From Wallemia ichthyophaga EXF-994 (Eukaryota > Fungi > Basidiomycota): DNA of 32,000 bases. This document shows positions 144 to 14,368 of this stretch, one piece after another. How positions within the stretch are numbered: the first letter of the stretch is position 1; every line of letters starts with the position of its first letter. A program made the translations under genes and the position numbers. The stretch covers positions 90,001 to 122,000 of the forward strand of contig NW_008806295.1 in the NCBI RefSeq assembly GCF_000400465.1, in the 5' to 3' direction. The notes under the pieces are model-generated. The model had not been told where the DNA came from. It saw nothing but the letters and a program-made list of their open reading frames with translations, and made no database searches.

Positions 144-1739
144 CTAAGCTGCCTCGACTAAGACACCGCCGTTTTGAGCGACTTGTGCCTGCTTCTTAAT
201 CATCTCAGCCTGCTTAGCGTTACCGTCGACCTTTTCCTCATCGTCGAGCTCCCAAGACAAATACTCGTTCGTGTAGTTAGGTTGGAGTTCCTCGGGGAAG
301 ATACCGAGACGTTGAGAGTATCCAGTAACCTTTCTCCAGTCACGGTCGACGTTAGCCAGGTCCGAGCGCATATAATTGAATGATCTGGCGAATTGGAGAG
401 ATGCAAGGGTACTTCTCATAGCGGGCTGGGGTGGGTGTGAGGAATAGCCTTGCAATATACCTTTAATAAAAACCCACCTTCAACTCTTGGAAGAGTTCCC
501 AAGTGCCCTTTGGATCGCGAATGAGATCGTCGGCAGCTCTCTTGACAGCTTTCATAAAGCCACGAGCTTCGTTGGGGTGTGCTTCAAGCCATGCTGGTGG
601 GTGGGGTGAGCATCGCGCAAGCAGAACCCGCGCTCAATCAACTAACCTTCATTACCAATGTAGAGGATTGAACAGAAGCAGCAGCATCCCAGTTCGGCAA
701 GTTGGTCAATACTGTTTGTCATCGTGTTATCAACTTGGTCAGCCCGAACAAGTGTACCACGCATACCGCAGCATCTGCACATCCGTCGCAGGACGATTGA
801 CAGATTTACACCACTCCTCGAGCTACAAAGCGTTTCTGTTAGTATATGAAAAAAAGCAGTTAGTATAACGTTATCGATGGAATATAACGGGGTTATAAGG
901 ACTTGTTGCCATGAAGGCATCCCTTCGCATGCATGACCATGGACAGGTTCGGACCGTATTATCTCAGCAGCTGGCTGACGGATGGGTGTGCAAGTTACAC
1001 TCAGCCATCTATCTCCAGCTGCACCGGCAGCTCCATTGCAACAAGCTCCCGTTAGGAGATGTGCGTACCTTTTTGTGTACCGTGTACTGTGTACCGTGTA
1101 CCATCGATATCAAGACACCATTACAGAGCCCCAGTCATATTCCAGTCGATGTTCGCAGATAAAAAGACAATAAAGAGTGGAACCCTTATCTCACCTCTAC
1201 TTGTTGCATGTTCTCGAGACCGATACCAGCATGAATCTTGCCATCGATGAGTGCCTGGAGTTGCTTAAGTGGAAATGTCTCACTGCGGATACTCTACCCA
1301 CCTTGGAGATATTCATTCCACATCTAACAGCCTCGTACTCATCATCGCGCATGCCATGTGCTTGGGCAAGCTCAGCTACTTGAACCTTACCAAATTCGCC
1401 GACGTAGCCAATCTTCTTGCCCTTAAGCGAGGTAAAGTCATTTGTGACGCCATTGCCTTTGAGGTAGAGCAGACCTGTGAAGGGCTCGTCCATGAGTGTA
1501 CCAATGGATTTGATCGGGTAGCCGCGGGCTTTACCAGCAAGCGTGTGGATCATAGCCTTCAATCCGAGGTCTGCCTTGCCCGAGCCAACTATCTCGGTGA
1601 CGTCGGAAACATCCTCGGGGTGGATCGTCGCCACGCGAAGGTTTTCGTCTTTGAAGTAGCCCTTGTACTTTGCCACGATTAGCGGGACGTGGTACGCGGT
1701 GAGCTCCCAGTTTGTGCAGCAAACGATATCAATTGACAT
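144..1739 (-). CDS. NMT1: 4-amino-5-hydroxymethyl-2-methylpyrimidine phosphate (HMP-P) synthase, NMT1/THI5 family; 6 exons (1739-1302, 1254-1195, 822-767, 711-647, 593-478, 425-144), about 338 aa
   Basis: Hand-spliced product carries THI5 hallmarks: [15 protein letters not shown] (PLP Lys and substrate His), [44 protein letters not shown] and NYTNEYLSW. All five introns are GT-AG, and the exon lengths sum to 1017 nt with the frame preserved. Confidence 0.97.
899..1049 (-). ncRNA. TPP (THI-box) riboswitch aptamer inside NMT1 intron 2 (intron 1194-823)
   Basis: Minus strand reads cttgttgcaatggagct-GCCGGTGC-agctgg...ccagct-GCTGAGA-taata-CGGT-ccgAACCTG-tc-CATG-gtcatg-CATG-CGAAGGGAtgccttcatggcaacaag. 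It contains the UGAGA pyrimidine-sensing motif and all expected helices: P1 (atggag/cttcat plus cttgttgc/gcaacaag), P2 (gccg/cggt), P3 (cagctgg/ccagctg), P4 and P5. The host is a thiamine-biosynthesis gene. Confidence 0.93.
1075..1101. repeat. 7-nt tandem repeat, 4 x GTGTAC(C/T) (GTACAC on the NMT1 sense strand)
   Basis: GTGTAC units at 1075, 1082, 1089 and 1096. Confidence 0.9.
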
Positions 1740-2020: not shown

Positions 2021-3669
2021 TCACTTCTTTATGTGTTCCTGAGAAGCTCCATGATCGAGCTCACCGAGTTCATGCGGCCGTGCGTGCTCGTCGACGTCCT
2101 CGACGTCCCTCACCATAGTTTCATCTGCGAGAGTAGTGTGGTTTTTGATACGCCACCAGACCATTGGGAGGGCGAGGAGGAGACCACCTGCCATGAGTGC
2201 CCACGATGAGGCGAGAGCGCCTAGCGATCCCATTTGGCTATCGCAAGCCCAGATGATAGCTGCACCAGCCGACTGCAAGCCCTTATAGAAACCAGCGTAA
2301 AATGCCAGTTTAGATGGATCATTGCTCATTGATCCCATCATCCAATATGCGTATGTCTGCCACGCAGCGTCGAGTGCGCCTGCGAATATGTAGAGAACGA
2401 TGCGGTGCGGGTAGCGCGATGACGTCAGATCAATAGTATCGATCTGGTCAGTGGGCGTATCGAAGAACTGACGTTGTATTGTGTAGAAACCTGCATTCGT
2501 CGCCCAGACCATGGCGAAAAGGACACACCATCCAATTGTAGCCCTCCACTTGCGGTTCACCCTGCTGATGTCGAGCAGCTGGCCGAAGATAACCGCGCCG
2601 ACTATCTGCGCCAGCCAGTAGCAGAGGCCGTTGAGGGATCGCGTACGAACGTTGTGCAGCGCTGCGTTGAAGTCGTTGAACTGGTACGTGTAGAACCAGT
2701 TAGAGGCGAAGAAGAAGGGGAAGAGGAGCGTGATCCAAGGGTCGTCGACTAGCGCTCTGTAAAGGTTGATGAGTTCTGTCTTCCATGTTGTCGCTCTCTC
2801 GATGACAACTGCTGAGCCATCCTCTCTGATCATCTTGGAGGGTGCACGCAATGTTAATGGTAGTAGCACGCCCAGGGCCGTTACCGCGACAAAGGCAATA
2901 TACGTCGAGTTGGTCACTCCCCCTTGTTCAGAGTCCCAATTCGTACCGACAGACACAGCCGACCCGATAACACCACCGAAATTGAATATTACCCAGAAAA
3001 TAGAGGTGTATAGACCTTTCTTGTCCTCAGTTGGGTACGAGAGCATCAGCGATCCCTGTTTATGCGTTTGTTAGTCGAGGTGCTGCCTGAGACATGCAAC
3101 AAGAAAAACCCAACTCACCTGAGCAGTCCATAGAAGACCAGCGCAGCAACCGAGTATAGCTCCTGCTGCAATGTTGAAGCCGCCCGCATCTGGGTGGTAG
3201 TTGAGTGCGAGGAATGAGCCAATGTAGAGACAATAACCAGCGCTACCAATCATCATGGCAAGGATAGGGCCAATAAGGTTAACGACACTACCGCCAAACC
3301 AAGCGACAGTTGCGAATGTCGCGTAGAGTGCAGCGTTTGCCTTGTTGGCCACTTCCGGAGAAGCCTGTCCACCTCCACCCAAACCTGGAGAAGGTGTGAG
3401 TAAAGTGTGGGGATGTTGTGCTCGTGTGCCTCACCAGTCAAAGCGTTGAACAGTCCCGGACCACAGAAGCAGATCAAACCGACGATTGAAACCTGCGGGT
3501 GGACAGTGAGTCAGACTGAAGCAACTGCCCGTGTGCATCCTCAACCCACTTGCAGCAGTGGATGGCAGTATAACGCCTTAAGGCCACTAGGTTTGCTGCT
3601 GTCCTTGTTAAGTATGTTTATAACTGGCGGGAGAGACGACTGCCTCTTCTCTAGCGTGTTGGAAGACAT
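2021..3669 (-). CDS. UNC-93-like (DUF895) MFS membrane transporter, about 4 exons
   Basis: Spliced motifs VSIVGLICFCGPGLFNAL-GGGG, ANAALYATFA, GAILGCCAGLLWTAQ, MLSYPTEDKKGLY, PFFFASNWFYTYQFN and AGFYKGLQSAGAA are typical of fungal UNC-93-like proteins. ATG at 3669 (MSSNTLEKR). Confidence 0.88.
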
Positions 3670-3836
3670 CGGACAGTTGAAGCAAAAGCGTTTGGAACCA
3701 AAATAGCCCAGTTGACGTTTTAGGTAGTATAAATTAAGCGTGGCCTAAAAAGGAAGTCAAGTCATCTTATACAGCAGGTGATAAGCAGAGCGGCGAAAAG
3801 GGCGAAGAATAGATTAGATTGGTACAAATGGGTGTT

Positions 3837-5053
3837 TTAATTTGCGTGAGACTGTAATAAGCGCGATATGTTCTCATAACTTCACATTCCAGGTTAGTAA
3901 GGCCAATTTTCACCCCCAACTTAACTCACACAACGAACGTAACGCATGTTCCTGGCAGAATCCTTATCGCGTTAACCCCGGCGCCTTGATAAAAAGCACG
4001 TAAGCCTTCATTCCTGTAGGTCGAAGCGACGCAATGGGCTATTGAGCTGTAATGATTTTGGTTCTGCGGCAATTTCGGGGTTAGTAGGCGAGGTCAGCAG
4101 GTGAAAGCGTAACTGACCTGAATTCGAGTGCGAACCACTTGATAAGGGTAGGTAGTTCCCAGGGCAAATAATTTCGATGCTCCTGACATGAGCGTGTATT
4201 CCCAGTTGGACTGGGTTGTTAGACAGAGTGAGCGCACCAACACAAATCACTCACCAGCCAAGTTGGAGTGTTCGATAGGTTCCCAGAAGATTTCGAACGC
4301 CAAATCTTTAGCTCCTCATAAACTGCGAACTGTATTGCGCCCTGTAGCACACCGAATAAAGCGAGTAGAGTGCCTTTCCAGTACCCGCGCATTCCTTCTT
4401 TTCTGCCAATTTCAATTAGACCGTCTGGTAGTTTGTTTATTAGTGTATCTTTCTGCTTGCACTACATCCACCCACGCGCTAGCCCGCGATAAGCACCTTT
4501 ATCATGTTGTTTGGTTGAGAAAATTCTCGTTTTGATGAGCCAAAGGGGATTTGTAGTGATAGCAATGATGGAACCTGCCTTTAAGTTATTTTGGATGTAT
4601 ATAGGTGTAATTAAGAACCAACCTGCTTCAGATGCCGCGTAGAGATGTTCCAATGGACCCAAATTTCGCGCAGGATGGCTAGAATGAAGGCGATTTTTAA
4701 CGCCTGTGTAGCTGTATCGAGGTTATAGCGTAAATTAATAGCTAAATTCCCCTCTTACAGCCAGAAATATCCGCCCCAGCTCACGGAATTACCGATAATA
4801 TTGGTAGTAACGCCTCGCCACATGCCCTTCCAGCCATTGCTTCGTATGAATGTACTTAATAAGTCTTTGTGTGTAGATTTATCCGTAACTTGCAAGCGCA
4901 CCTTGATTAGATCTAGTGGCTGCATTGCGATTGTGGAAGCGATTCCAGCGCCCATTCCAGCGACACCGTGGTCCTGAATAGCATAAGATACTGGATGTAG
5001 AATATCATTCAACTCACCAAACTGGGATTGCTAAAATAGCTCGATTGTGTCAT
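3837..5053 (-). CDS. FLX1: Mitochondrial carrier family (SLC25) protein, FAD/folate carrier FLX1/SLC25A32-like, multi-exon
   Basis: Three carrier-signature repeats: QPLDLIKVRLQ, NPLWLIKTRIF and YPYQVVRTRIQ. Also WKGMWRGVTTNIIGNSVSWGGYF and EGLRAFYQG...PGTCVTFVV|YENI. The subfamily was assigned from remembered similarity. Confidence 0.8.
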
Positions 5054-14296: not shown

Positions 14297-14368
14297 TGTG
14301 GTTGCCAGGAATCGAACCTGGATCTTACCGGCCACAACGGAACGTGCTAACCATTATACCACAACCAC
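14297..14368 (-). tRNA. tRNA-His (GUG), intronless
   Basis: GTGGTTG/CAACCAC acceptor stem, D-loop AATGGTTA, anticodon loop TT-GTG-GC, T-arm CCAGG-TTCGATT-CCTGG and discriminator A. A T6 Pol III terminator follows. No genomic G-1, as expected for eukaryotic tRNA-His. Confidence 0.96.

Follow-up and report, generated by a model that had tools for sequence, protein, structure and literature searches.

The closest described relatives of the element reported here are fungal riboswitches for thiamine pyrophosphate (TPP) that lie in introns. In Neurospora crassa, NMT1 carries its aptamer in an intron of the 5' leader, where P4/P5 mask the second donor; the switch acts through upstream open reading frames (uORFs) and turns the gene off by donor choice (Cheah et al., 2007). 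Coding-intron TPP switches that lead to premature stops have been shown experimentally in two genes, N. crassa NCU01977 (Li and Breaker, 2013) and DUR31 of Candida parapsilosis; for the latter, Donovan et al. (2018) suggested nonsense-mediated decay (NMD). A Type III model was described by Mukherjee et al. (2018; Sci Rep 8:5563, PMC5882874), experimentally untested according to its authors, in which an internal intron of 200-400 nt contains two donors with an in-frame stop between them and an AG just before the next exon. In this study we analysed a 32,000-nt stretch of the Wallemia ichthyophaga EXF-994 genome (the window; contig NW_008806295.1, positions 90,001 to 122,000), which holds a TPP aptamer within intron 2 of the thiamine-pyrimidine biosynthesis gene NMT1/THI5. 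We conclude that this intron very probably contains a genuine eukaryotic TPP riboswitch, most likely a thiamine OFF switch that acts via splicing.

A row in Supplementary Data S1 of Mukherjee et al. (PMC5882874) lists, for W. ichthyophaga NW_008806295.1, a riboswitch at 90905-91057 (-) with the entries Intron, Type III and NMT1, in a gene at 90144-91739 (-) with 6 exons (XM_009271838.1). With 90,000 subtracted, the gene falls at 144-1739 and the riboswitch at 905-1057, and the strand and exon count agree with our model. Because the coordinates match at this exact offset, the same NMT1 element has already been catalogued. The record is a table row only: Wallemia is unmentioned in the main text of that paper, and none of the paper texts searched names Wallemia together with a riboswitch. 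In the portion of Supplementary Data S1 considered here, the aptamer of the ascomycete Type III NMT1 rows is no farther than about 150-450 nt from the listed gene start, and in Thermothielavioides terrestris the NMT1 aptamer lies upstream of the ATG. Within that portion, W. ichthyophaga may be the only truly mid-coding NMT1 case.

The NMT1 gene and the aptamer in its second intron

All coordinates below are window positions; a position n within intron 2 corresponds to window coordinate 1195 - n. The gene, the intron and the aptamer are placed as follows:

144-1739 (-): NMT1/THI5 gene for hydroxymethylpyrimidine phosphate (HMP-P) synthase, 6 exons, 338 aa, a single open reading frame on splicing; ATG at 1739, stop codon ending at 144
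1739-1302, 1254-1195, 822-767, 711-647, 593-478, 425-144 (-): NMT1 exons, from the splice model
823-1194 (-): riboswitch-bearing intron 2 of 372 nt, in phase 0 behind codon 166 (splice model); same intron position in Wallemia mellicola (328 nt), Naganishia and Puccinia
920-1028 (-): aptamer core with P2, an extended P3, J3/2 CUGAGAU, P4 and P5, from the RF00059 alignment, compensatory changes in P3 and covariation in P4/P5

The splice model yields one 338-aa frame with introns of 47, 372, 55, 53 and 52 nt, and in the spliced minus strand 5/5 of these are GT..AG. The spliced protein matches Pfam NMT1 (PF09084, 2e-65) and is collinear with yeast THI5 (PDB 4h65, 1.6e-121). Its closest protein is W. 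mellicola NMT1, at 90% identity. Because the THI5 alignment runs ungapped through the exon 2/3 junction MQQVE/LEEW, the 372-nt intron 1194-823 can be placed after codon 166. These intron lengths, and a long intron after about codon 166, had been given in a preliminary description of this stretch and were reproduced here. THI5/NMT1 is a very highly expressed enzyme that is consumed after a single turnover, and for this reason a tight shut-off by thiamine matters to the cell.

The preliminary description had also claimed a full TPP aptamer in the long intron and none upstream of the ATG, and had proposed a search with RF00059. That search gave a significant match at 1038-903 (-) that spans the whole model (1-105) at 44.1 bits, with an E-value of 4.3e-7 in a 1.2-kb search and of 1.1e-5 when the whole window was compared with all 4227 families. 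The match contains CUGAGAU and a 43-nt insertion in P3 and is without P3a, which is the eukaryotic form. P1-P5 are complete, including the CUGAGA pyrimidine sensor in J3/2 and the pyrophosphate-sensor helices P4/P5 (GAACCUG...GCG.AGGGA). No second TPP match was found in the window at E<=0.05, the region upstream of the ATG included, which leaves intron 2 as the only site and bears out both claims.

The riboswitch intron is conserved in W. mellicola, where an intron of 328 nt at the same codon (contig L001, 6560-6887) has a TPP match of 42.9 bits. The exon end and the adjoining GTGAGAT are identical in the two species, and both have a stop at intron codon 3 (TAA vs TGA). Further into the intron, the block AAAAGGTACGCACAnCTCCTAACGGGAGCTTGTTGCA(t)ATGGAGCTGCCGGTGCA is invariant, as is GGGATGCCTTCATGGCAACAAGTC; the aptamer core is nearly invariant and the branch site ACTAACAGA is conserved. 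The remaining intron, flanks included, is unalignable between the two species. P3 pairing has been kept through changes on both strands (GCAGCUGG/CCAGCUGC vs GCACUUGG/CCAAGGGC), compensatory changes affect 6/8 pairs of P4/P5 among seven fungal NMT1 aptamers, and the ligand-contacting motifs are invariant across Wallemia and Naganishia. With conservation at the orthologous site and covariation, the TPP match exceeds chance.

Expression platform of the Wallemia intron

Going from 5' to 3' in the transcript, the end of exon 2 and intron 2 contain these elements:

1200-1208 (-): exon-2 end element 'alpha' UGCAACAAG, 5 nt upstream of GU1, whose sequence complements the P1 5' strand and nearly repeats the P1 3' strand
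1189-1194 (-): productive 5' splice site GU1 (GTGAGA), from the splice model; identical in W. mellicola
1186-1188 (-): in-frame TAA, third intron codon (intron nt 7-9); W. mellicola has TGA at the same codon
1129-1150 (-): clamp helix 5' strand AUCGACUGGAAUAUGACUGGGG (intron nt 45-66), which pairs with 892-873 in the minimum free energy (MFE) fold
1112-1121 (-): candidate anti-GU2 strand AUGGUGUCUU, which could sequester GU2 in a local hairpin, from near-optimal local folds in both Wallemia species
1075-1102 (-): four tandem copies of the 7-mer GGTACAC, directly 5' of GU2 (GGTACGC), from Tandem Repeats Finder (TRF); absent from W. mellicola
1061-1073 (-): conserved block, AAAAG followed by GUACGCAC, with the candidate alternative 5' splice site GU2 at their junction; identical in W. 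mellicola amid a diverged intron
1046-1058 (-): hairpin H0 (CUCC-UAACG-GGAG), in whose loop a CUAAC resembles a branch site, from folding; identical in both Wallemia species
1030-1045 (-): P1 5' strand CUUGUUGCAAUGGAGC, which pairs with 918-902
902-918 (-): P1 3' strand GCCUUCAUGGCAACAAG, from the RF00059 alignment and folding
873-892 (-): clamp helix 3' strand CCCCGUUAUAUUCCAUCGAU (intron nt 303-322), immediately 3' of P1, from the MFE fold
838-865 (-): two copies of the branch-site consensus UACUAAC, at 865-859 and 844-838; W. mellicola has kept ACUAACAGA
823-824 (-): 3' splice site AG, from the splice model

Read-through from exon 2 gives GTG AGA TAA, with the stop at 1188-1186, and a second in-frame stop (TGA) follows at intron nt 58-60. 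Every failure to remove the whole of intron 2 meets the TAA at intron codon 3, in line with the earlier expectation that mis-splicing here would create a premature stop and not uORF control. The GT of GU2 is at 1068-1067 (intron nt 127; donor 1068-1063, GUACGC), the only GTRNG in the intron besides GU1. GU2 is a credible donor because GUACG(C/G/U) recurs at the donors of the Naganishia and Rhizoctonia splice models and at the boundary of the annotated Exidia intron. Splicing from GU2 would keep 126 nt that contain both the in-frame TAA and the TGA, and the predicted branch A's lie 37 and 16 nt from the 3' splice site. The near-optimal folds give a weak hint that the anti-GU2 strand may hold GU2 in a hairpin.

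Three further features of this region were recorded. The GGTACAC repeats resemble slippage copies of the GU2 motif and could be extra weak donors or decoys. H0, between GU2 and P1, might serve as a branch-site decoy or bind a protein. Finally, the palindrome CUCGAG occurs on the minus strand at 1232-1237 in exon 2 and at 817-822, where exon 3 opens with these six bases; in the MFE fold both copies are paired with each other. This pairing is probably incidental because W. mellicola is without the exon-3 copy.

P1 is unusually long, about 16 bp (1045-1030 with 918-902), and a predicted long-range helix, the clamp, closes directly next to it. In W. mellicola the clamp is made from different sequence: UAUGAC/GUUAUA is replaced by CGAGAA/UUCUCG, and GGGG/CCCC by GGUG/CAUC. 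By a hand count from the predicted helices, the two Wallemia species differ by about five double compensatory changes and zero disruptions. The duplex energy of the clamp was reached by 7/500 shuffles in W. ichthyophaga and by 0/500 in W. mellicola. A clamp-like long-range helix in Naganishia was marginal in N. friedmannii (37/500 shuffles) and not significant in N. cerealis, and thus we claim the clamp for Wallemia only. When the clamp is closed, about 44 nt separate GU1 from the stem, and the UACUAAC sites follow about 14 and 35 nt past the stem; the resulting path from GU1 to the branch site, roughly 60-80 nt, approximates the length of the ordinary introns of NMT1. The aptamer, GU2 and H0 would then form a closed insert.

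The P1 5' strand has a second potential partner in the element at the end of exon 2. Their Watson-Crick run is 9 bp here and 10 bp in W. mellicola, and an equal or longer run appeared in 62/2000 shuffled introns for W. ichthyophaga and in 9/2000 for W. mellicola. The duplex of alpha with the P1 5' strand has a predicted energy of about -16 kcal/mol, compared with about -20 kcal/mol for P1. At the exon-2 end, 6/6 non-Met codons are identical between the Wallemia species, compared with 52% gene-wide. These comparisons suggest that the P1 5' strand may pair alternately with the P1 3' strand and with the exon-2 end.

NMT1 riboswitch introns in other Basidiomycota

A comparison of intron positions among NMT1 orthologues places the Wallemia site in common with W. 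mellicola, Naganishia and Puccinia, and the riboswitch introns of Rhizoctonia and Exidia elsewhere. The individual findings, with our contig labels in brackets, were:

Naganishia friedmannii and Naganishia cerealis: same VE/LEEW intron as Wallemia (codon 166; L007 3246-3627 and L009 2268-2712), with a 14-nt microexon before it; TPP 30-31 bits
Rhizoctonia solani: a different intron, YIG/NE, at about codon 204 (L006 2507-2807), with a 9-nt microexon after it; TPP 35 bits
Exidia glandulosa: intron after about codon 85 (L010 1877-2198); TPP 39.6 bits
Puccinia graminis: intron present at VE/LEEW, without an aptamer
Violaceomyces palustris: no aptamer found

The Naganishia, Rhizoctonia and Exidia aptamers are all sub-threshold (30-40 bits) and all lie in coding introns. 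In Naganishia and Rhizoctonia, the fourth codon of the riboswitch intron is an in-frame stop. For Exidia, with its uncertain intron boundary, the position of the first in-frame stop varies with the splice model, from 17 to 52 codons into the intron. NMT1 riboswitch introns therefore occupy three or more coding positions in Basidiomycota, often beside microexons of 9-14 nt, which may point to repeated relocation or gain of a riboswitch-bearing intron within NMT1. As two published surveys report NMT1 switches to be nearly or wholly absent from Basidiomycota, their spread in this group may be under-reported, though Moldovan et al. (2018) may already cover it.

The public gene model of Exidia may be slightly wrong. 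The annotated protein is without the conserved Glu of LMDEPFTG, and a 3-nt microexon GAG (L010 1948-1950) is possible; it would sit between a 70-nt intron and the riboswitch intron.

As to the neighbourhood of NMT1 in the window, a mitochondrial carrier gene (3929-4973), an MFS (major facilitator superfamily)/UNC-93-like transporter gene (about 2021-3700) and NMT1 (144-1739) follow one another on the minus strand. This order is common to both Wallemia species and spans L001 2770-7553 in W. mellicola. The 90% cluster that contains W. mellicola NMT1 also holds proteins of the adjoining mitochondrial carrier and an 892-aa fused 'NMT1-domain' model; this mixture is probably a clustering artefact from a merged gene prediction in one strain. 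A tRNA-His (GTG) gene lies at 14297-14368 (-), with 57.6 bits in Rfam and agreement from ARAGORN. A weak sR35/sR17 snoRNA-like match at 1295-1349 falls inside coding exon 1 of NMT1 and was taken as chance.

Proposed mechanism, alternatives and known systems

Based on these elements, we propose a model in which thiamine shuts off NMT1 through the splicing of intron 2. The sequences themselves show the aptamer and where it lies, the stops, GU2 and the clamp, both partners of the P1 5' strand and the conservation in W. mellicola; from them we infer TPP binding, the direction of the switch, the use of GU2 as against retention, and NMD. When TPP is low, splicing would join GU1 (1194) to the AG at 823 and take out the whole 372-nt intron, so that the 338-aa enzyme is made. 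The clamp (1150-1129 with 892-873) would aid GU1 by shortening its effective path to the branch site, and the complementary end of exon 2 could hold the P1 5' strand. With high TPP, a closed 16-bp P1 would leave a path of about 60 nt, instead of about 210 nt, between GU2 and the branch site; alternatively, closure of P1 may lower the use of GU1 in some other way. Either splicing from GU2 or intron retention would leave the TAA and encode a 168-residue fragment without the C-terminal half of the enzyme. The mis-spliced NMT1 mRNA would be expected to undergo NMD.

Several observations weigh against this model. In partition-function modelling, the accessibility of GU1, GU2, the branch sites and the 3' splice site was unchanged whether the aptamer was forced closed or forbidden, and so the switching step is not visible in silico. 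[quoted passage not shown] The conservation comes from two independent Wallemia lineages only: two Logan contigs (L002/L003), nearly identical to W. mellicola (93%), add almost no intron variation, and a metagenome scan with the conserved 19-mer that runs from H0 to the P1 5' strand returned a single unrelated GC-rich chance match and no further Wallemia lineage. Lastly, the aptamer score of 44.1 bits is below the Rfam gathering score of 54.3 bits for RF00059. For this reason a default Rfam gathering scan gave only the tRNA and no TPP match, and it was the use of E-value thresholds that revealed RF00059. This blank could suggest a chance match in a long intron that holds no riboswitch. However, the classical 5'-leader NMT1 aptamer of T. 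terrestris likewise scores 44.1 bits, so that a sub-gathering score is normal for fungal aptamers, and the shortfall stems from the long P3 and the lack of P3a in eukaryotic aptamers. With a window-wide E-value of 1e-5 over the full length of the model, a location in a thiamine biosynthesis gene, covariation at an orthologous site and an independent entry in a catalogue (Mukherjee et al., 2018), a chance match is effectively refuted and is the least credible of the readings considered here. The geometry and the modelling also bear on whether the structure is an ON switch, in which a TPP-stabilised P1 stacked on the clamp promotes removal of an over-long intron, or is constitutive or a relic. 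Clamp and P1 would form one continuous stem that brings GU1 near the branch site, and no site is masked under the ligand-state constraints. On the other hand, it would be physiologically senseless for the end product to activate the gene for HMP-P synthase, and the validated fungal switches of NMT1, THI4 and transporter genes are all OFF switches (Li and Breaker, 2013; Donovan et al., 2018). A relic is further contradicted by the invariance of the ligand-contacting motifs in Wallemia and Naganishia. We regard an ON switch or a relic as improbable.

More serious is the possibility that TPP controls retention of the intron, as in DUR31 and in algae. Here the bound aptamer and the clamp would hinder GU1 or the branch site while GU2 stays idle, and the result would still be a premature stop, because all non-productive routes reach the same TAA. 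The main effect of thiamine on C. parapsilosis DUR31 is an increase in unspliced RNA, and use of the second donor is unregulated. At +4 and +6, GU2 itself (GUACGC) does not follow the usual donor, and part of it is predicted to be paired. Yet the GU2 block AAAAGGUACGCAC is perfectly conserved in an otherwise diverged intron, which is hard to explain if it has no role, and the motif GGUACGC recurs in the riboswitch introns of Naganishia. A retention-only mechanism like that of DUR31 is thus a serious rival, though we consider it clearly less likely than our preferred reading. If GU2 is used, it might be controlled as in Neurospora NMT1, with P4/P5 masking GU2 in the absence of TPP and TPP freeing it, only transferred to the coding region. 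The layout is the same: of two donors, one is distal and the other proximal, directly 5' of the aptamer, and the branch sites follow closely on the aptamer's 3' side. However, the complementarity between GU2 and P4/P5 is at shuffle level in both Wallemia species (383/500 shuffles were as good in W. ichthyophaga and 101/500 in W. mellicola), and there is neither a leader intron nor any uORF logic. We have therefore rejected masking of GU2 by P4/P5, and the transferred Neurospora mechanism as a whole seems about as improbable as an ON switch, if marginally better placed.

If the OFF switch that we favour is confirmed, an annotation based on proteins only misses the main regulatory element of NMT1, and retention or partial splicing of intron 2 would be marked as regulated rather than noise. 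The present analysis adds conservation in a second lineage, the platform elements (GU2, the clamp, the long P1 and the exon-end complement) and the varied intron positions in basidiomycetes. With its mutable elements (the exon-end complement, the clamp and GU2), the Wallemia intron is a compact two-donor system of 372 nt that could be used to study the movement of riboswitch introns and the way in which RNA structure steers donor choice.

Compared with N. crassa NMT1 (Cheah et al., 2007), the Wallemia switch belongs to the same gene family and aptamer class and has a proximal alternative donor just 5' of the aptamer; the OFF action established there is proposed here. It differs in that its intron is mid-coding, a premature stop replaces the uORFs, and P4/P5 are not complementary to GU2. 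With NCU01977 and DUR31 it shares an aptamer in a coding-region intron and non-productive splicing or retention that would lead to a premature stop, but the host is NMT1 and not a transporter gene. The NCU01977 intron is also longer, about 600-900 nt, and has several alternative donors, whereas the Wallemia intron has 372 nt. In NCU01977, donor S1 is followed downstream by an element called alpha, whose pairing partner is the P1 3' strand. We sought its consensus, RGCGGYRRY, and did not find it in Wallemia. Near the first donor of Wallemia, the end of exon 2 is predicted to pair with a P1 strand over 9-10 bp and might in this way compete with P1, but this candidate element lies on the exon side, upstream of GU1, and its partner is the opposite strand, the P1 5' strand.

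The nearest match is the Type III model. As in that model, the aptamer is in an internal coding intron (intron 2 of 5, 372 nt, within the range of 200-400 nt), with GU1 at nt 1, the candidate GU2 at nt 127, the TAA (nt 7-9) and the TGA (nt 58-60) between them, and an AG at 824-823. The preliminary description had presented the arrangement as a different architecture for NMT1. It does differ from that of Neurospora NMT1, but it was not new, as the locus had been listed as Type III by Mukherjee et al. (2018). Thus our finding is correct and largely ordinary, and both locus and design were already known: its novelty is low because the locus stands in a published table and the coding-intron/premature-stop logic had been predicted as Type III and shown in other genes. 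The clamp, the extended P1 and the exon-end complement are absent from the description by Mukherjee et al. (2018). We tentatively suggest, as a joint claim that is rather less probable than its alternative, that the Wallemia platform is of an undescribed kind, with a covarying clamp and a 16-bp P1 whose 5' strand toggles, and that the NMT1 riboswitch intron has been relocated or gained repeatedly in Basidiomycota.

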